Shown here: positions 35,502 through 46,820 of the stretch, in pieces
Layout of the letters: every line of letters begins with the position of its first letter
How positions within the stretch are numbered: position 1 is the stretch's first letter
NCBI GenBank assembly: GCA_002189035.1
Contig: CM007989.1
Span: 1,364,001-1,428,000, forward strand
Direction of reading: 5' to 3'
Length of the DNA stretch: 64,000 nucleotides
DNA from: Utricularia gibba
Taxonomy: Eukaryota > Plantae > Magnoliophyta
Notes under the pieces: model-generated
Told to the model about the DNA's origin: nothing
The model's input: only the letters and a program-made list of their open reading frames with translations
Databases searched by the model: none
Translations under genes and position numbers: made by a program

Positions 35502-36312
35502 AACTTGCAAAATCGAAAGCTCGACGTCCAATCAACCGCCAGCAACAAAACACGATCTCTGTATCTCTATCTAGAGGAAAAAGCGAAACCCAATTCGGGA
35601 TCCGTCCCCCGGTATATGGATATAAATTATGAAATTATTGATACAAGATAACAACGGATGTGAAAATCTAGAGAGAGAAACCTCCCTCTCTCTAACGGTG
35701 GAGGAGATAGTGAGGAGGGTCCAATATATACGACGCGCAGAAAGAAACCCTCATCCATTGTGGACCGAAAAGTGCATGGATTTAAACTATTGGGGCCTTT
35801 TTGGAGATTTAACCTTTATTGGGTAATTTCCGAATAAAGAAACATTTCTAGGGCAAATTTGCAATACAGCGGATGAAATCCAAACGGTGACAAAGCCCAT
35901 GCCTTTTGGGCTTGGGGCCCGACAACTAAAAGTGTTTCAAGTTGCTTTTCTTTTTTAGTTTCCATGGAATTGCATCACGCAAAAATGAGGACGAGATTAT
36001 GATTCACGGGAACTGTAAAAGAACGGCCTTCCGCGGTAAAAATCTTGATTTTCTTTTTGGGTATCTCTCTCCTTCAAGGTTTTTTTAGTCGATGATGGAG
36101 ATTGGTATTTTCTTGTATGGTTTTTGAAATGTTGGATGATGATAATGGTATCGCTCTCCATTTTTTGTAAGGAGTGAGTTTGGAGTTCGCATCATTTATC
36201 AGTGGCAACCGGCCAACCTTTAATTGGAATACAGAATAGTATTACCATCATGAGCTCTTTGAGTTCTGTGATTCCTCCTGATTATGAAGATGGTGTACAT
36301 TGAGTGCAGAAG

Positions 36313-37692
36313 ATGGAGTTAAGAATGATTAATTGTTCACCATATGTTGCGGATAACTCTCTTGAGATTTCCTTGAGAGCGGCTTTCTGTTTTCTGAAAC
36401 CCAAGCTTAGGCCCCCTTTTCCATTGAGCATCTTAACAGTGGAAGAGTACACAGAAATGAATAGAGCAATTCTTTATGGAATTCTGTGTGAACAAGGTAT
36501 GATTGAAGTTCATATTAAGCATCTACATGGCATTATCACTGATGGGTATCAGTATTTCACGAGCATGCTTGTCAAGGTTGTGAGTGAATTGTATGGGAAG
36601 CTAGTTGCTGATTCTAAAAAGCAGTTGTTCAGGATAACTCATGAAATGGTTGATGCTTCAGCCATTGGAGTTGACACATTGCTTGTGGGGCTTATGAGGC
36701 AGATAGTTAGTGGAGATTATGGTGAGGACAATTTGTGGCTGTGTTCGGAAGTGATCAGTATTCTTTCAAGCAAATGGGATTGTTTGCTGGAGCTTGAAGA
36801 GCCCTTGGTTTTATCTGGTGCTCTTTATGTGTTCTTAAGGTTATTAGCTGATCATTTTAAGCTGAGGAATGACCCAAAGATTAACTCTTTGATAAAACTG
36901 GAGATTTCTTTCTGTGTTAGAATGTTCAGAGAGAGATTCTCCTTGTGTTTGAGGATTGGGAGAGACATTATTCGGCTTTTGCAAGATTTGGTTAAAATAC
37001 CAGAGTTTCAGGAAATATGGAAAGACCTACTGTACAACCCACATGCCTTTGGGGCTGATGGATTTGTAGACATATCACAGATATACAGCACAAGAACATC
37101 AAGATGGTACTTTTCACTGCGGTTGACTCCTGAAATGGAATCTCAGTTGCGGTTCTTACTCACCAATGTTAAATTTGGCGGTCAAAAGCGTTATCAACTT
37201 TGGTTTGTGAAGAAGTTTCTTTCTACGCCAGAGAGAAGCCCTACAGTGATCGACATTGTGAGATTTGTATGCTGCGGTCACTATCCATCAAATGATACCA
37301 TCAACTCTGATATCCTTCCCAGATGGGCACTAATAGGATGGCTTCTGCTTCATGACCCAAGGATTCATGTTCAAGCAAACTTGAAGCTTGCTCTTTTATA
37401 CGACTGGCTTTTCTTTGATGAAAAAGTGGACAACGTTATGAACATCGAGCCTGCAATTCTGTTGATGGTGAATTCCATCCCTAACTATATAGATATCACA
37501 CACACCCTTCTTGAGTTTCTTTTTTTGTTAGCAGAATACTATGATCCTGATAGGAGGCCAGTCTTATGTCGTGGGATATCAACTGCTTTACATACTCTTA
37601 TCAGGAAGGGGGTGATCCAGTCACTTGATGTGTTACTTAATTGTGATAAGATTTCTCCCCTTGTCAAGGAAAGGTTAAGAAATTGTTCATAG
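36313..37692 (+). CDS. INTS3: Integrator complex subunit 3 (SOSS-A) homolog, intronless
   Basis: LEISLRAAF..LKPKLRPPF...NRAILYGILCE, LTPEMESQLRFLLTNVKFGGQKRYQLWF, DIVRFVCCGHYPSNDTINSDILPRWALIGWLL, KLALLYDWLFFDEKVDNVMNIEPAILLMVNSIP. Confidence 0.9.
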   Translation: MELRMINCSPYVADNSLEISLRAAFCFLKPKLRPPFPLSILTVEEYTEMNRAILYGILCEQGMIEVHIKHLHGIITDGYQYFTSMLVKVVSELYGKLVADSKKQLFRITHEMVDASAIGVDTLLVGLMRQIVSGDYGEDNLWLCSEVISILSSKWDCLLELEEPLVLSGALYVFLRLLADHFKLRNDPKINSLIKLEISFCVRMFRERFSLCLRIGRDIIRLLQDLVKIPEFQEIWKDLLYNPHAFGADGFVDISQIYSTRTSRWYFSLRLTPEMESQLRFLLTNVKFGGQKRYQLWFVKKFLSTPERSPTVIDIVRFVCCGHYPSNDTINSDILPRWALIGWLLLHDPRIHVQANLKLALLYDWLFFDEKVDNVMNIEPAILLMVNSIPNYIDITHTLLEFLFLLAEYYDPDRRPVLCRGISTALHTLIRKGVIQSLDVLLNCDKISPLVKERLRNCS

Positions 37693-38479
37693 GTTATCCC
37701 CATATTGGATTTAGCAGCTGATCAAATGCAATTTAGAAAACTAAGACTTTAGAGTCACAGGTGGCAGAGATCGACAAAGTTGGTCTGTTCACCATTTAGT
37801 TGGTGTGTGTTTGTTCATGTTGGTGTATGTATTTGTAACCTTCATGTGCAATTTCTTGAGGAAATCAAACCTCAGTAGAATCTATCACCACTTCACTTCA
37901 CCTTGTATTACGATAAAAGGAGCTACGTATGGTACAACTATTTGTACAGAATAAAAGAGCATAATCAGCTGTCCATTTTTAATCTATTCCATTACCAATT
38001 AAGCAGCACAAACAAGATTACATGGAGAACACATTATGATGCCTCTGATCTGTTGTTGGACTGCTTTTTGTGCAAGACTGATAAGAGGAGAAGTGCATGG
38101 CAGCGACAGAATGGTTTTCCTTTCACTGTTCCATGTTAAAAGAGAGCAAAAAGCAGCAGTAGCAGCTTCCACCTGCTTTTCTTGATTCCGAAACCAAAAA
38201 CTTTTCATGTGTTATCCAGTTCACCTTCACCTTTTACCATCCGCAACTGTAATTAACTTCAGTCTTGGGTGTTTTTGCTAATTAAAAAAAGTGAATTTGG
38301 GGGCAACTTCAATTTCAAATTTTCTTCCTACTGAATTTCACAAAACAAAAAACATACATTCTGGAGCCAAAATTGAGTCTTGGGTCAGAGATGGTCTGCC
38401 TTCTTCCTCTCCTCCGTGAAATCTGACCCGACCCTACAACCAAAAGAAAAAAACACTTGACTCTTCTGTCTCTACTCTC

Positions 38480-38950
38480 TAGTATTTACGCAGGGGGCTG
38501 GGGGGGTGTGAGTCCCAGTGAAAACTTCAAACTTGTCTCCTTTTTCTTTTTTCTCCAAAAGACTCATTCGCATATTTTTGGCATCTACGGCGCTCGAAGC
38601 AGCTAATGCCGGAGGAGAAAAGGCAGTTGAATGGAGAAGATGAGGTAATGGGTGCTCCCAAAATTTTATCTTTTCGGAGTCATTGGTGACCGTGGCGACG
38701 GTGCCGGCCGCGGCCGCGCCGTCGACGGAGTGATATTGGCGGAATGGCTCAATCCCCGGTGCTTTCTAACCCTCTTGTTTTACTTGCCGTCGCTTTATTT
38801 GCCTTCACTTGCTTGAAAAGTTGTTCATCATATTAATATGCATTGTCCAAAGCTCTGCTGTTGTAGAACTCTCTCCTTTATTTCTTGCATAATTTTGGAT
38901 TATTGGTGTAAAAAAACATTATAAATTGTAAAGCTGTAATCAATTACCTC
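38480..38950 (+). ncRNA. Candidate lncRNA / small-ORF transcript carrying a miR171 target-mimic site (boundaries approximate)
   Basis: TATTTA element at about 38483, pyrimidine-rich leader, only short ORFs (27 aa and 30 aa), AT-rich 3'-like tail, and the bulged miR171 site at 38729-38754. No matching hairpin arm nearby, so not a MIR171 precursor. Confidence 0.55.
38729..38754 (+). promoter_or_regulatory. miR171-complementary site with 3-nt bulge (target-mimic architecture)
   Basis: AGTGATATTGGCG[GAA]TGGCTCAATC versus the perfect miR171 target (AGT)GATATTGGCGCGGCTCAA(TCA). Apart from the GAA insert the only difference is one C>T giving a G:U pair. Confidence 0.8.
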
Positions 38951-39255
38951 CCTTCAAGGTTTAAATCTTTGGATTAACGAATAAAACATGCATGGGAACA
39001 CACACACGGGCCAAAAGAGCAAAAAGATGAAGCATGTACAGTCCATGAAGGCCACGATGCTGTCATATGAGTAACCCATTTTGCAGCTTCAAATTCCAGT
39101 CTCGAGAGTTAAATTTCATGAACACCAAATGCTCTCTGCAACTTCAAGTCTTCAAGTAGCCATTTTGGCTGTTTGTTTTAGAGCTTAAGTTCGGGATACA
39201 ATACCTTGAACAAGACTTGGCAACTGAAAGATTTGGCGAGTTTCCTAACAGTCCA

Positions 39256-41549
39256 CTACTTCTTTCTCCTTGATGCTACTTCCAGTGCCCAAGATTTTCC
39301 AAGTTCAGTTTGAAACTTGCCTACATGATTAATTGATGCAAGTGAACGATTCGAGGACGAAGTTTATGAAGAAAACTAGCAGGGTATTAACCTGCGGTCG
39401 ACACGAAAAACTCCTCTAAGTCCTTCCCCTGATCTGCAAAAGAGTAAAGAATGTGAGTCAGTTTCTAAGACATTGATCCAACTGTTGGGGAAAATGAGGA
39501 GGCTTCGGTAAACATAATGATTAGATGATCGGCTAGGTTTGGGTCCCCAAACTCAGGTCAAGGAATAAGCAGACTCAGATTTGGCATATCAATGCAACAA
39601 CGGAGGATAGGTCCAAAGAGCAGGATTCCATTCCCCATCCATCAAAGAAAAGGTTAAAAAAGACAGATGGATAGGATCACAATGTAGTATAAGGATACGA
39701 TGTAAGGTCTAGAATTTGAAGGATTGGGTCTCACCAATTCGACTGGAAAACTATTTATACAAATGAAAGTGACCGACTTTGACTCATTCCTGCCTGTCCC
39801 ATGGTCCCCATTTATTGGTTGAGTGTTATCATGAAGAAAACAACATATTCCTGGGGCTATGGAGCTATAAACGGCCAGGACAATAAGTGTCCATGCAATC
39901 GATGGGAGAAGACATTCATAATAGTGCATTTGTAAGCATTCACACCATGATGAGGAAATAGATGAAGTTCACTGCATCATGGCACAATGAAACATGAAGA
40001 GGTGAAATAGGTACGCCACAGCTGGATAAAGGCGATCAGAGAGTACCAACAATGAATCACGTGGTGCGGATGCTTTGGATTTGATCAAAGGTGATTGTGG
40101 TTTTTACTGTAGCGGGTGAGAAAATGACTGACACTAAGAGCTTTAGGCTATAGAAAACAGACTTTGGGGGTAAAGGTGCTTGGAGGTGACAACAGGCCCA
40201 CTAATTGCAAATGCCTGATGTTGCATAGTGAATGCGATTAATCATGGAATTCTATATCATTGGTAGAGAGACGTCCAGACACCATCAAATTCTCTCAAGA
40301 ATAAATTGGTAACCAAATAAAGATTGTTGCAGTAACTTACCTTTTCATACTCTAGGGCTTGAAGTATCATCTCCACCTGCAATGCCACAGAAGCAGTTAA
40401 ACACGCACTTAAAAGATCATCTAGAGTCTGCTTCAGATCCAAGTATCATTCGGGATCCATTCAATTCAATGGCAATTTGTACCTTATCAAAGTCCTTCAC
40501 AAGTTTAGCTTCTACCGAAGAATTCTCCTCGTACTCTAACCACAACTCACTTATTTCTTTAGCTGCAGAAGATCGATTGTGATCAATCAAACATTTATAT
40601 AATAATACAACCTAAACAGGCATAGCACAGAAAATGTTTAAAACACCAAAATACCTCGTGCCCCACCACCAAGTAGCTCGCACATGCTATCTAATGCTTC
40701 TCGCTCACGACGACTCTTTTCCTCCTTTGGAATCCCATCAGATGGAGTAATATCGCCAATAATAGCTATCCAAATAAAAAGAAGAGCAGCGCAGGATTAG
40801 CAACATAAAGCCCCTCCCACTTCACTCCGCATGGAAATGAAGCATAACCTTCTTCCATTCCGACACATAAAAGAATGCATGAGTGGGCAGCAGTCACTCA
40901 CCTTCAGCAATATCATGCACAATTGCCATTTTTATACACCTAGATTGCAGAATTTACTCAATTACATCTGCATTTTGTTCTCCTTATTCAAGCAGAATAG
41001 GAAAAAAAAAAAGACTCACTTGTCACGGTTCACGCCAGGAATATCAGAAGCTACGAGGGCCATTAACCCATTCGATACATGTGGTCAGCTATAGATTCAG
41101 GTTCCTGAACGCCTCTCCGCACCCACCCAGCTCTCTTTGTCGTCTATAAATTTTCATACACAAGGATAAATAGACCTCCTTTTCAAAAGGGCAATCCAAT
41201 TATAAACTTCATCACTACATTTTACCACCCAAAAATAAAATTCCATCCAAATTCACCAATGCAATACATTTTCGACTCCCTCCCGAGTCTCATCGCCCTA
41301 CTGAAAATCCAAAGCCCCATCACACATCCAAACGAGCGGAAATACCTTAAGCCGGTGGCAGAGAGTGAGAAAATCAATGGCCGACGATGGGGGAGTTGAT
41401 GAAGACGACGAAAGTGACTCCGCCGCCATCCTCAAACCCCTCGACGCGTATGCCGCGGCGCGAATCGGCACCAGCCCGAACTGAGTTGAAGTGTGAGAAG
41501 GCGAGAACAAAGTTTTTGTTACGCTTATCAACAATACTCTTCCCCCCAT
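39256..41549 (-). CDS. HDDC2: HD-domain protein 2 (HDDC2-type 5'-deoxynucleotidase) with putative organellar transit peptide (one apparent frameshift at about 41067)
   Basis: [116 protein letters not shown]. Confidence 0.93.
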
Positions 41550-42264
41550 TTCGCGGCCAAGAGTAGTGCATTTCTTTCCCTCCATTTCTAACCTTTCTTC
41601 CTCCAAGCAATCTATTGGGCCTACGCGTTAATCCGGCCCATAATTTGAACTCCAATTTAACACATCCCACATACCCGGGCTCCTCAACAAGGCCCAAATG
41701 CAACCAACATGAAAAATCAACTATATTAATTTATTTTTTACATTTTATATTATTTAATAATTTTTCTTTATTGCACGATTATGTGGATTTATCCATCATC
41801 TTATGTAGCGTGGAGACCCTGATCCATATTGCACTTTTATTTAATAGATCTCCAAATTAAATCCGATGCTATAAAATTAATGCAAATAATTGCCTTCTAC
41901 CAAGTGCCCAACCAGACCATAGTTTCATACCTTGTTCTATGACTTGGGCCCCACAAAAAAGAAAAAGGATTAAATAATTCACAAAAGCTTTTCATAAAAT
42001 AAAATAAAATATTCAAGTGGCAAAAGTCTGAGGATTCACCCAGCTGGAATGGATAAGGAAATACAAAGGGAGTGTCCGAGTGTCGGCCCCGCGATGGTCA
42101 AAATTGGGAAAGGGGGGCGGTGGGATTGTATATAATTATTTTCCAAATTTATATACATGATAATATTTGCTAAATTACATCTCTATCTAATAACTTGTAT
42201 ACAAAAGTGTGAACGGTAAATAAAAACACGAGTTATCATAATCGATAAAATAACTCTCAATTAT

Positions 42265-42576
42265 TTTTTTATAAAAATTCAAAATAATCAATTTATTTTA
42301 AAGATGATCGATCAATCATATTTATAAGTTATCAATATATAAAGATACAAGAGTAAATATATTTAATGGATTAAATTGATTTGAATGGATAAATATTCTA
42401 TTGAATATTATAAAAAAATTATATAAACACATGTACCGTACATATATTATATTTATATTTAAATATATCTAGTTTTATTTTATTTTTAAAAATAAAAATT
42501 TATTAAAGATAAAAGGTTTTGATTTTTTTATTTCTCTTTTTTATAAAAATTCAAAATAATCAATTTATTTTAAAAG
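42265..42576. repeat. About 40-bp direct repeat pair in AT-rich intergenic DNA
   Basis: TTTTTTATAAAAATTCAAAATAATCAATTTATTTTAAA at about 42265 and about 42537. Confidence 0.7.
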
Positions 42577-43518
42577 CGACCAAGCATATTTATTATTTCG
42601 GTTATTTCTATATAGTTACATAATCCTTGTGATCACATCCTATGGAAGTCAATGAAGTATGTCTATGGCCTCAAATTTGTATGATATATGTGAAATATAT
42701 ATATAGATGCATAGATTGGAATATGGGGGGTGTAAATAATTGGGGGGCATAGGGACACCTACGTAACTACTCCTAAGTCCTAGTGAGAGTCTGTTGCACT
42801 TTGATTGGTTTAAAATAATTCAACTTAGAGATATGATGACATCCTCCCAACTCCCTACGTGACACGGCGTATCTTGCATCGACACTACTCCAATCATTCA
42901 CTCGGGACTCGCCTCCAGAGTAACAAATGTCACCGTCATAGTTAACCCACACACGAAGACATCTCGTGATCACAATTAATCACCAATGATTGTTGTTCTG
43001 TAGAGTTTCTCAAATCAAATGCATAGTAAATTTAAGAATTCATTTTTTAATTATTACCCATTATAATGGAATAGATGGCAGGAATAAAAATAGTCACACA
43101 ATTCCAAGAACATTCGTTTTCAATATTATATGTTTTTATGATCCAATTATCACGATTATACATTCTTATCTTTCATGAAAAAGATCTAATTTAATTAATA
43201 TGAGATAACTTCATTAGATCTATGATCTTATATTACGTAAAAGAAAATAACATAAAATTATGAATGTTAAATATACAAAATTTAAAATATCATTGTAATA
43301 ATATGATAATTATATTTGATTATAAAATATTTTTAAATTTATGAATAAAAAATTGATTTTGAAACGTTTTTTTTTTAATATAAATGGTTGTAAGCGAGGC
43401 CGGTGTCGTTGAAGAGTCTACTTCTATTTTCCCCCTTTTTATTTTTAACAATTTTTTGTAACACAAAAAGGGGGAAATGGAATAAAATTAAAATACACAA
43501 TTTTTTTATCTGATAATT

Positions 43519-44823
43519 TCATACAGCTCGGCGGTGGTTGTACCCATAGTACGATAGGTACCACTTGACGAACTTCTTCAGCCCCGTCGTCAAGTCGGTC
43601 CCCGGTTTATACCCCAATTCCGTACGTGCTGCCGTGATATTCGCGTGTGTGAACGGCACATCGCCGTTCCCCGGCATATCCACAAAATTCCTCTTCGCCT
43701 TCAGCTTCAAATGCTTCTCAAGGATGGCCACCATCATCGGCACCGTCACCGGCGACGTATTCCCTAAATTGAAGATCCGATACTGGGCTGGCCGCCGTTT
43801 CTTTCCGCCGGAGCCCGTGCTTTTCTCCGCGGTATCCAGCGAGGCTACGCACCCTTTCACGATGTCGTCGATGTAAGTGAAGTCCCTCGCCAATTCCACA
43901 TGATTCTTCCCTCTGTAGATCGTAATCGCCTTCCCCTGCATAATATTCCTCGTGAAAGAGAAATACGCCATATCCGGTCGTCCCCACGGTCCGTAAACTG
44001 TGAAGAATCGCAACCCGGTGATCGACAATCCGTAGATATGGTTATACGTATGGGTAATCTCCTCGCCGGCCTTCTTCGTGGCGGCGTAGAGGGACGCCGG
44101 TTGGTCTGTCCGATCGGATTCCGAGAACGGTGCTTTCTCGTTCAAGCCGTAGACAGAGCTCGAGCTTGCCCAAACCACCGCCGGCTGCGGATCGGCGGTT
44201 TTACAGATCTCCAGAAGCGTCACCAGACCGGCAATGTTGCTGTGGACATAAGAATGGGGATTTTCCATTGCGTACCGTACGCCTGCCTGGGCCGCCAAGT
44301 GCATAACGTGAGTAAATTGCCCTAATTCGAAAAGCTTCGTCAACAATCGAGCGTCGTTGATATCGCCCTCCACGACGAAGATCTTTCTGGAATTGAGAAT
44401 CTTACGCCGCGCGCGTTTCAGTGACGGGTCGTAGTAGCTATTGAAGTTATCAATTCCGACGACCCCATCTCCGCGTTTTTTCAACGCCAGCGAAACGTGC
44501 GTGCCGACGAATCCGGCGGCGCCAGTTACCAATACGGAAAATCCATTGTCACGGTGGATCTGAGCGGAGGCGAGTACCTGTCTCTCCCATTGGATTCCCC
44601 CCCAGGCGGTGGTGAAATACCTGCTACCGGAATCGACGAACGATTGAAAACTGACATACGCCGCCGTGAGGGCGACAAGGAAGAGTGCCCATAGGAACAT
44701 CGTGCTCGTGGAGGCGAAGCAGCGGTGTAGATGTCGGTTAATTGAAGTGGATCTATCTTTGAACTTCCCCGGCGTGGAGGGGAGAAAGAGCTCCTCCTCA
44801 GCCGCCGCCGCCGACGACCGCAT
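43519..44823 (-). CDS. GAE1: UDP-D-glucuronate 4-epimerase 1, intronless
   Basis: PSTPGKFK, HRCFASTSTMFLWALFLVALTAAYVSFQSFVDSGSRY, Rossmann motif VLVTGAAGFVG, catalytic YAATK, FFTVYGPWGRPDMAYF. Confidence 0.96.
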   Translation of the reverse strand: MRSSAAAAEEELFLPSTPGKFKDRSTSINRHLHRCFASTSTMFLWALFLVALTAAYVSFQSFVDSGSRYFTTAWGGIQWERQVLASAQIHRDNGFSVLVTGAAGFVGTHVSLALKKRGDGVVGIDNFNSYYDPSLKRARRKILNSRKIFVVEGDINDARLLTKLFELGQFTHVMHLAAQAGVRYAMENPHSYVHSNIAGLVTLLEICKTADPQPAVVWASSSSVYGLNEKAPFSESDRTDQPASLYAATKKAGEEITHTYNHIYGLSITGLRFFTVYGPWGRPDMAYFSFTRNIMQGKAITIYRGKNHVELARDFTYIDDIVKGCVASLDTAEKSTGSGGKKRRPAQYRIFNLGNTSPVTVPMMVAILEKHLKLKAKRNFVDMPGNGDVPFTHANITAARTELGYKPGTDLTTGLKKFVKWYLSYYGYNHRRAV

Positions 44824-45329
44824 TTTTCGCCGATGGAAAAGCTCCGATTGGGAAGAAAAGCAGTTGCGAAGGAACGAAGAAAGCGCACCTGCTAAGGAAA
44901 GAGAAGGGGGGCAATTATAAATAAATGGAGGGGGGCCATAGAAAGCGCGTGCGTAGCCAACGCGCTGGATCACAAAAATAGAAAAATCGGGTAACGAGAG
45001 GAGCATTCTATAATTTCCCAAAATTAATTAATTGTTTTAAAAATATATATATGGCTTGGGCTTCGAAAAGTGGGCCTGGACACCGAGTTGAAGAGAAGAG
45101 GCATTTCGCGTTAGGAGATAGGGTGCCCACGGTAAGACTTTTTCTACAACCTGTTGTTTCAGTTGCCCATAACCTGTTTGAGAATATGCGCGTCTGAATT
45201 TTCCTAACCTGTTTGTTACTTGGTGTCGCCCTCTTGAATGGGGCACTTTAGAAGTGGACTGTTATTTTCAAGGTCCACGGGAGTAGCTGAAAGTTCGTTG
45301 CTGCTTCGTGGTTAATCAAAATCAAAGCC

Positions 45330-46820
45330 ATGAGCATCACATGGCCGAGGGTTCTGACGCCGACCCATCTCTCGAAGCTAATGCGCACACAGAAAAACCC
45401 ATTGAAGGCTCTGGACATCTTCAATGAAGCTAAAGTTAAGTACCCTAATTACCGCCACAATAGTTTGGTTTACAGTACCATGATCAAGGCATTGGGAAGC
45501 TGTGGTAGAGTGGCTGAGGTGAAAGAGGTACTCAGAATGATGAAAGAAGACCCGTGTCAGTGTTATGGTTCGGTATTCGTTGAAGCTATAAGGAGTTACG
45601 CGAGGGCTGGTTTATTGGATGAAGGGATATTGCTATTCAATAGTTTACCTGAGTTTAATTGTGTGAATTTCACTGAACCGTTCAATGCTCTTCTTGAGAT
45701 TATGTTGGAGGAGTCCAAATTAGAACTTTGTCATCGTTTTATTCTGGAGAATTTTCATCGTTGCGAGATAAAGTCCAGGCTTCGTTCCTTTAATGTGTTG
45801 ATGGATGCACTTTGTGGGATAAACAGATCTGACCTTGCGTTGCAGGTTTTTCGAGAAATGAGTTACCAATGGTGCTACCCTGAGAGGAAAAGTTTCAAGA
45901 TTTTAATGAAGGGGTTGTGTAAAGATGGAAATTTTACAGAGGCTGTTGATCTGTTGAACACAATGATCAGTAACAAGAGTTGTGTTGCTGACATATCCGT
46001 GTACAGAATTCTGCTTGAGGCTCTGTATGAAAAAGGTAACGTAGATGAGGCTCTGGAATTGCTTGAAACTGTATTGAGAAGGGGTGTGAAGGCTCCAAAA
46101 AGGTACTTCAGGGGCTTAGATTTGCACTTCAAACAAGTTGCAAGTGTTGAGCAGGCAAAGGCTTTGATTAATGAGCTGTTGGTCAGAGGCTCAACGCTGA
46201 GTTCAGATAGTTACGAGGCCATGATTGTTGACCTTTACAACGAAGGAAGGATTAATGAGAGTGGTTGGCTAATCAAGGAAATGCACAAGAAAGGCTTCAA
46301 AGCATCCTCTCCAATCTATGAAGCCAAAACAGCAGCACTCTTTACATCCGGTGAGGTTGAGGCGGCAATGGATGTTGTTGAACGGGAAATGATCGAAAAT
46401 GGATGCCTTCCGACTCTGAGGCTCCATAAAATTGTCATTAAAGGACTCTGCGATACAAGACATGTTCCTCGAGCATTAGATCATCTTGAGAGGATGTCTA
46501 AACCGCTTGGTTGCGTCCCTGACAAAGAAACATACAAATACATTGTTGATGGACTCTGTTGTGATGGTAAGTACATGGAAGCCAGTGAAATTCTAGAAAA
46601 GATGCTAAGGAAAACCTTATGGCCTGAAGATGAAATGTACACGAAAGTTATACACGGTTTATGTCATACACAAAGGCCACATATAGCCGCGATGTGGCTA
46701 GAGGAGATGATTAGTCAAGCTAAAGTCCCACCAGTTTCAGTGTGGAGTTCTTTGGTATCTGCTGTTTGTGACAACAACTTTACTCCAAACAAGATTTTCA
46801 TGGCTGCACTCACAGGGTGA
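45330..46820 (+). CDS. P-class pentatricopeptide repeat protein (resembles At1g05600 as I recall it)
   Basis: 496-aa intronless ORF starting MSITWPRVLTP, with tandem 35-aa motifs such as VYSTMIKALGSCG, SFKILMKGLCKDG, TYKYIVDGLCCDGKYMEASEILEKM. Confidence 0.92.
   Translation: MSITWPRVLTPTHLSKLMRTQKNPLKALDIFNEAKVKYPNYRHNSLVYSTMIKALGSCGRVAEVKEVLRMMKEDPCQCYGSVFVEAIRSYARAGLLDEGILLFNSLPEFNCVNFTEPFNALLEIMLEESKLELCHRFILENFHRCEIKSRLRSFNVLMDALCGINRSDLALQVFREMSYQWCYPERKSFKILMKGLCKDGNFTEAVDLLNTMISNKSCVADISVYRILLEALYEKGNVDEALELLETVLRRGVKAPKRYFRGLDLHFKQVASVEQAKALINELLVRGSTLSSDSYEAMIVDLYNEGRINESGWLIKEMHKKGFKASSPIYEAKTAALFTSGEVEAAMDVVEREMIENGCLPTLRLHKIVIKGLCDTRHVPRALDHLERMSKPLGCVPDKETYKYIVDGLCCDGKYMEASEILEKMLRKTLWPEDEMYTKVIHGLCHTQRPHIAAMWLEEMISQAKVPPVSVWSSLVSAVCDNNFTPNKIFMAALTG

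Follow-up and report, generated by a model that had tools for sequence, protein, structure and literature searches.

A GAA-bulged miR171 site in a short RNA between INTS3 and HDDC2: a candidate endogenous target mimic

Introduction

The HAM/SCL6 regulators, which act in meristem maintenance and branching, are under the control of miR171. The miRNA is described as conserved across land plants, and artificial MIM171 and STTM171 lines have been reviewed (PMC8910752). Natural miR171 mimics have already been established (PMC9171120, PMC5599236); the mechanism itself is known. Here we describe a locus in a Lamiales plant that may provide another such mimic. It lies in a 64-kb stretch of DNA, which as a whole we call the window.

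The mimicry of miR399 targets by IPS1/At4 (Franco-Zorrilla 2007, as described in PMC6162444 and PMC5599236) is among the closest described systems. Like IPS1/At4, our locus appears to give rise to a short non-coding Pol II RNA with a single site that is perfect save for a 3-nt central bulge, and that is expected to be bound without being cut. The two systems differ in the miRNA involved (miR399 there, miR171 here) and in the place of the bulge, which lies at 10/11 in IPS1/At4 and at 11/12 (or 8/9) here. There is no sequence similarity between them.

In Lilium pumilum, lpu-eTM171a and lpu-eTM171b are proposed to sequester miR171 and spare SCL6, and have been tested with overexpression and point mutations (PMC9171120). 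Both are endogenous transcripts proposed as miR171 decoys, as is the RNA of our locus. Unlike our RNA of about 390 nt, the lily decoys are monocot cDNAs of 1.4–1.9 kb.

The rice MIKKI RNA has mismatches at positions 11 and 14, escapes cleavage by miR171 and mimics its target (PMC5599236). MIKKI and our locus have in common a non-coding transcript with a miR171 site that is imperfect next to the slicing position (11), and the site in MIKKI is uncleaved. MIKKI, however, is a spliced transcript of an LTR retrotransposon; its site is made by splicing and contains mismatches instead of a bulge. The transcript described here is unspliced and we saw no features of transposable elements in it. A search of the window and of eight related loci for further copies of the 500-nt region found none, and we therefore also reject the possibility that the locus is a copy of a repeat or transposon.

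Rules for endogenous target mimics (eTMs) have been formulated in PeTMbase after Wu et al. Under these rules miRNA positions 2–8 pair perfectly, three target bases stay unpaired somewhere between positions 9 and 12, and no more than three other mismatches occur (PMC5148581). Experiments have shown that decoys with bulges of 1–5 nt at positions 10/11 inactivate miRNAs (PMC3121747).

The miR171 Site

A sequence-only reading of the window had quoted a bulged miR171 site on the + strand. Re-reading the sequence gave identical letters, AGTGATATTGGCGGAATGGCTCAATC, in which GAA separates two blocks complementary to miR171 (Table 1). The T at 38745, right after GAA, forms a G:U wobble with position 11 of the miRNA in the canonical register and with position 8 in a shifted register. 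The pairing that had been claimed for both registers was reproduced by a pairing scan and by RNAduplex. The canonical isoform UGAUUGAGCCGCGCCAAUAUC pairs at positions 2–21, with a mismatch at position 1 and the G:U at 11. Its bulge falls between positions 11 and 12, and the duplex has a dG of −30.1 kcal/mol, 77% of that of the perfect duplex. The shifted isoform UUGAGCCGCGCCAAUAUCACU pairs at all 21 positions, including one G:U at position 8; here the bulge falls between positions 8 and 9, and the dG is −32.2 kcal/mol (82% of the perfect duplex). The two isoform strings are both printed in dozens of papers, including papers on the Lamiales Osmanthus and spearmint. For the exact sequence of the site, a search of the literature returned unrelated primers only.

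Table 1. Position, strand and basis of the features around the miR171 site (window coordinates)
Feature	Position	Strand	Reading and basis
TATA-like TATTTA, candidate core promoter	38483..38488	+	candidate, from sequence read and contig start
Host RNA, discrete, unspliced, ~390 nt	38512..38905	+ (probable)	Logan RNA contigs
GC-rich palindromic hairpin containing GCGGCCGC	38690..38728	+	fold centroid structure, self inverted match
miR171-complementary site with central bulge	38729..38754	+	AGTGATATTGGCG-GAA-TGGCTCAATC; direct read, pattern count, pairing scan, RNAduplex
GAA bulge, 3 nt	38742..38744	+	direct read, pairing scan, RNAduplex
ATG ORF, 30 codons, start codon formed by bulge	38744..38836	+	ORF list
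HDDC2 last exon and 332-nt 3' UTR	38924..39319	-	RNA contigs, domain search

The bulged miR171 site is genuine and goes beyond chance. The pattern GATATTGGCGNNNYGGCTCAATC occurs once in the 64-kb window and in none of 100 dinucleotide-preserving shuffles. For one isoform, 25 bulge layouts and the base composition of the window, about 4.5e-6 equally good sites are expected per 64 kb, in line with the earlier judgement that the match is very unlikely to be accidental. Even over a genome of roughly 100 Mb, the expected number of miR171 sites of such quality stays well below one. An unbulged miR171 complement is absent from the window, even if three mismatches are allowed. Within the host RNA the site is about as accessible as the remainder of the molecule (mean unpaired probability 0.40).

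The bulge itself could have been an assembly artefact, a possibility that the sequence-only reading had raised. RNA contigs from four runs cross the site without any base difference, and therefore we regard the GAA insert as real.

The Host RNA

We placed Logan contigs from four RNA runs (X1–X4, from three studies) on positions 36600–41900 of the window; these contigs carry no direction. In each run a separate unspliced contig spans the site, at 38512–38905 in X1, 38572–38874 in X2, 38524–38873 in X3 and 38547–38885 in X4. Abundance is low, with word depths of 4.5–7.8 across the four runs. Positions 37839–38369 have no depth in any run, the INTS3 contig stops at 37724, and nothing joins the host RNA to INTS3 or HDDC2. 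The same observations lead us to reject the idea that the RNA is part of the INTS3 3' UTR. Hence, the site resides in a discrete RNA, about 390 nt long and distinct from both INTS3 and the main HDDC2 mRNA, and the unannotated transcript that had been proposed between these two genes at 38.5–38.95 kb does exist. If the RNA is read from the + strand, the site lies about 217 nt from its 5' end.

Small length differences occur within the host RNA. There is an extra T in the T-run after 38546 in X1 and X3, and an extra CT after 38868 in X4; the site is invariant. Directly 5' of the site lies a stable palindromic hairpin (Table 1), which forms a sharp local GC peak of about 0.6 amid a GC content of 29–45%.

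One of the runs, X3, comes from a divergent accession. Its contig has no differences in 351 nt over the host RNA, compared with 11 differences in 981 nt of HDDC2 introns. This contrast may be a weak hint of within-species constraint on the host RNA.

A target mimic is expected to be non-coding, and the ATG ORFs in the host RNA all have 30 codons or fewer. The longest open frame is 54 codons long, starts with GTG and reads VILAEWLN across the site. It belongs to no Pfam family and has no real homologue among 1.84 billion proteins, where phmmer returned two low-complexity matches only. The ORF of 30 codons, whose start codon is formed by the bulge, is preceded by three tiny ATG ORFs (2, 5 and 12 codons). 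A similar site in another plant, described below, reads GAAAGG at this point. Because the ATG is missing there, the 30-codon ORF is probably non-coding.

The sequence-only reading had also argued that the flanks of the site are unlike the GRAS context of natural miR171 targets, and that there is no complementary arm nearby, so that the site is not a miRNA precursor. We agree on both points. We reject a decayed GRAS/HAM fragment, because no GRAS similarity is found in Pfam at E<=10 and none by phmmer among the 1.84 billion proteins. We reject a MIR171 precursor as well: no inverted arm lies within 400 nt, the fold of 361 nt shows no excess stability (z of −0.39 against shuffles), and a search of Rfam at E<=10 yielded no MIR171 match.

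Strand of the Host RNA

Only if the site lies in sense within a transcript can the RNA act as a target mimic. The RNA is present in four runs, in contigs without direction, and its strand is the least secure part of the case; indirect cues, among them a TATA-like box and the base skew, favour the + strand. TATTTA begins 29 nt upstream of 38512, where coverage starts. Over 38650–38900 the + strand has more T than A, and the skew changes sign at 38900–38950, at the onset of the - strand HDDC2 3' UTR. The ratio of host RNA depth to HDDC2 depth varies from about 0.14 in X1 and X2 to about 1.6 in X4. Because of the TATA-like box, the flip of the skew, the lack of a joint with HDDC2 and the variable ratio to HDDC2, we are fairly confident that the host RNA is transcribed from the + strand. 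The + strand is further favoured because a - strand RNA would leave the very existence of the site unexplained.

Proposed Action

How well the site follows the eTM rules depends on the register. With the canonical isoform UGAUUGAGCCGCGCCAAUAUC, positions 2–8 pair perfectly, the three-base bulge lies at 11/12 and thus within 9–12, and the imperfections outside the bulge number two (the mismatch at 1 and the G:U at 11), where three are allowed. The shifted isoform, in contrast, has a G:U at position 8 and its bulge at 8/9, outside the prescribed interval. The eTM architecture that had been claimed for the site is therefore found in the canonical register, with all pairing rules, and not in the shifted one. 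Overall, the decoy interpretation of the sequence-only reading stands in part. The discrete non-coding RNA, the lack of GRAS similarity, the lack of a precursor hairpin and the eTM rules in the canonical register speak for it; transcription from the + strand, escape from slicing and any effect on miR171 or HAM levels are its presumed parts.

We propose the following course of events. In the gap between INTS3 and HDDC2, a small and independent Pol II gene would be transcribed from the + strand into an unspliced non-coding RNA, about 390 nt long and with one miR171 site. AGO1 loaded with miR171 would bind this site through the perfect seed (positions 2–8) and the perfect 3' half. The extra bases GAA, together with the G:U beside the scissile position, would distort the central helix. 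The distorted RNA would then be held and not sliced, like IPS1 holding miR399. As a consequence miR171 would be titrated or destabilised, and the HAM/SCL6 GRAS targets would be freed from repression.

Counted from the scissile bond, the bulge is one base away in one register and two bases away in the other, and the site is likely to resist slicing. Resistance to slicing is an assumption on our part, because the bulge is at 11/12 (or 8/9) and not at the experimentally tested 10/11. Taking the evidence together, we hold with moderate confidence that miR171 is bound by the + strand, non-coding RNA of about 390 nt and leaves it uncut, and that in this way the RNA buffers the action of miR171 on HAM/SCL6.

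Related Sites in Other Plants

A pattern scan of metagenome contigs returned 52 stretches, which are mostly bacterial chance matches. Several are AT-rich, non-coding and plant-like. One of them, at L059:3247–3278, carries AGTGATATTGGCG-GAA-A-GGCTCAATC, with the same GAA bulge, in an AT-rich non-coding contig. The same site is found at L028:1042–1073; L028 and L059 are identical over the full 3,052 nt of L028. In 27 of 29 bases the L059 site is identical to the site in the window (AGTGATATTGGCG-GAA-N-GGCTCAATC-YCC), while the flanks cannot be aligned. The two loci are alike in combining a non-coding context with a GAA-bulged miR171 site. They differ in the base after the bulge, which is A (a mismatch) in L059/L028 and T (the G:U) in the window. 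L059/L028 come from a different plant, and no common neighbouring genes were detected. More than 15 RNA runs, of a much-studied plant (organism D) and also of organism E, contain the region of the L059 site in full. Judging from sequence and these runs, the site is likely to be an expressed miR171 mimic in its own plant.

Other inserts occupy the place of the bulge elsewhere: GGA in L033 and L034, TAT in L010, L031 and L039, and CAATA in L021 and L045, all within short open frames. L033 and L034 are 67% alike over 223 nt, whereas L010, L031 and L039 are 92–99% alike among each other. One match to GAA among four loci, at a probability of 1/64 each, would be expected by chance with a probability of about 0.06. 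The common GAA bulge thus hints, weakly, at common descent of the sites in the window and in L059.

Conservation that is confined to the site is the pattern described for conserved mimics. One could imagine that our locus belongs to an ancient eTM171 family of which several copies have been retained, and in which the bulge (G-R-A) and the pairing have been kept since before the split of asterids and rosids. This reading arises because the same GAA is present in the expressed L059 locus and GGA in L033/L034. We consider it doubtful, and put it forward as a tentative idea. If it were true, then multiple copies would have been kept in a very compact genome, which would mean that miR171 dosage buffering is under strong selection, and the sequence of the bulge itself would be functional.

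Alternative Explanations

It is unlikely, in our view, that the site sits in a + strand lncRNA and has no regulatory effect. Such a site might be what is left of a HAM target, captured or decayed, and it would be either sliced normally or too scarce to titrate miR171. The low depth of the RNA would fit, and so would the position of the bulge away from the canonical 10/11. The insertion is also in frame with the HAM reading (ILA-E-W-LN versus ILARLN), and positional conservation was not found in the other Lamiales examined. Yet the flanks show no GRAS similarity, either to Pfam or in the HMMER search against 1.84 billion proteins, and nothing but the 26 nt of the site stands out, as in known mimics. 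Moreover, the same GAA-bulged site is present in an expressed non-coding locus of another plant, and in MIKKI mismatches near position 11 alone are enough for mimicry (PMC5599236). Somewhat less probable still is that the RNA is a low-level read-through product or long 3' UTR isoform of HDDC2, transcribed from the - strand. In such a transcript the site would have the sense of miR171 itself and be unable to bind it, which would leave it as an inert relic or a coincidence. This reading would fit the right end of the host RNA (38873–38905), only 19–50 nt away from where HDDC2 is polyadenylated (38924), and the depth in X1 and X2, about 1/7 of that of HDDC2; the contigs, moreover, are without strand. 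However, the contig of the host RNA reaches the HDDC2 contig in none of the four runs, and in X4 the depth of the host RNA exceeds that of HDDC2. Coverage of the adjoining HDDC2 3' UTR is missing in X3 and X4, although holes in contigs prove nothing. A TATA-like box of the + strand matches the left end of the host RNA, the AT skew agrees with the + sense, and a site for which chance predicts only about 1e-6 occurrences would go unexplained.

The remaining explanations are much weaker. The locus could be a small-peptide gene, in which the ORF of 30 codons is what matters and the match to miR171 is secondary. The ORF begins with the ATG that the bulge forms and encodes a hydrophobic core like that of a signal peptide. 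Three upstream ATGs open tiny ORFs before it, though, the ATG is missing from the L059 look-alike (GAAAGG), and homologues were not found among 1.84 billion proteins. We think that a peptide gene is very improbable. Finally, the site on the - strand resembles miR171 with an insertion, as it would in a decayed MIR171 precursor, but nothing else points to such a precursor or to a chance match. With about 5e-6 sites expected per window and 0 of 100 shuffles, and with no inverted arm, no stable fold and no Rfam match, this explanation is effectively refuted. Our preferred reading thus remains that of a + strand decoy for miR171.

If the decoy is real, a Lamiales plant with a compact genome has in this locus a further natural brake on miR171. 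With about 390 nt and one site the locus is small and clean, and it would be well suited to measuring the importance of endogenous decoys. Combined with the GAA-bulged look-alike of another plant, it could help to show whether miR171 decoys are an old conserved gene family or scattered accidents.

Gene Neighbourhood

INTS3, the host RNA, HDDC2, GAE and PPR are packed into about 10 kb (36304–46820). In protein collections, INTS3 is most similar to Paulownia and Sesamum (at best 71% identity), and GAE to Genlisea (at best 87%). For comparison we used the INTS3 loci of Sesamum (L001/L002), Paulownia (L003), Erythranthe (L007) and Castilleja (L008), and the GAE loci of Castilleja (L004), Salvia (L005) and Erythranthe (L006); a look-up of INTS3 in Andrographis gave no result. 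The sequence-only reading had suggested comparing the interval between INTS3 and HDDC2 in related genomes for conservation of the site. Positional conservation was not found: INTS3 and HDDC2 are not adjacent in Sesamum, Paulownia, Erythranthe or Castilleja, and the eight loci, with the DNA downstream of Castilleja HDDC2 among them, contain no bulged miR171 site (penalty <=3). One scaffold of Castilleja carries both its INTS3 locus and its GAE–HDDC2 locus, about 1.4 Mb apart. The adjacency of GAE and HDDC2 is kept in Erythranthe and Castilleja. That the neighbourhood of INTS3 and HDDC2 is not shared is consistent with a rearranged, very compact genome.

HDDC2 itself is encoded on the - strand. 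Every intron reads CT..AC, an HD_3 domain is present, and the stop lies near 39259. Its 3' UTR ends at 38924–38934, which leaves about 19 nt to the host RNA, and the two would lie tail to tail. X3 is the only run with contigs over the HDDC2 introns (39406–40369). These contigs show about 1% differences and a deletion of 7 nt at 39439, and could be unspliced RNA or DNA of the divergent accession. The same run lacks coverage of 38901–39254.

In the RNA contigs of X1, X2 and X3 there is an extra C after 41066, in an HDDC2 exon on the - strand. Without this C, the frame of HDDC2 breaks between exon 1 (MAAESL...CHRLK) and the exons of the HD domain. The missing C at 41066 is probably a 1-nt deletion error of the assembly rather than a sign of a pseudogene.
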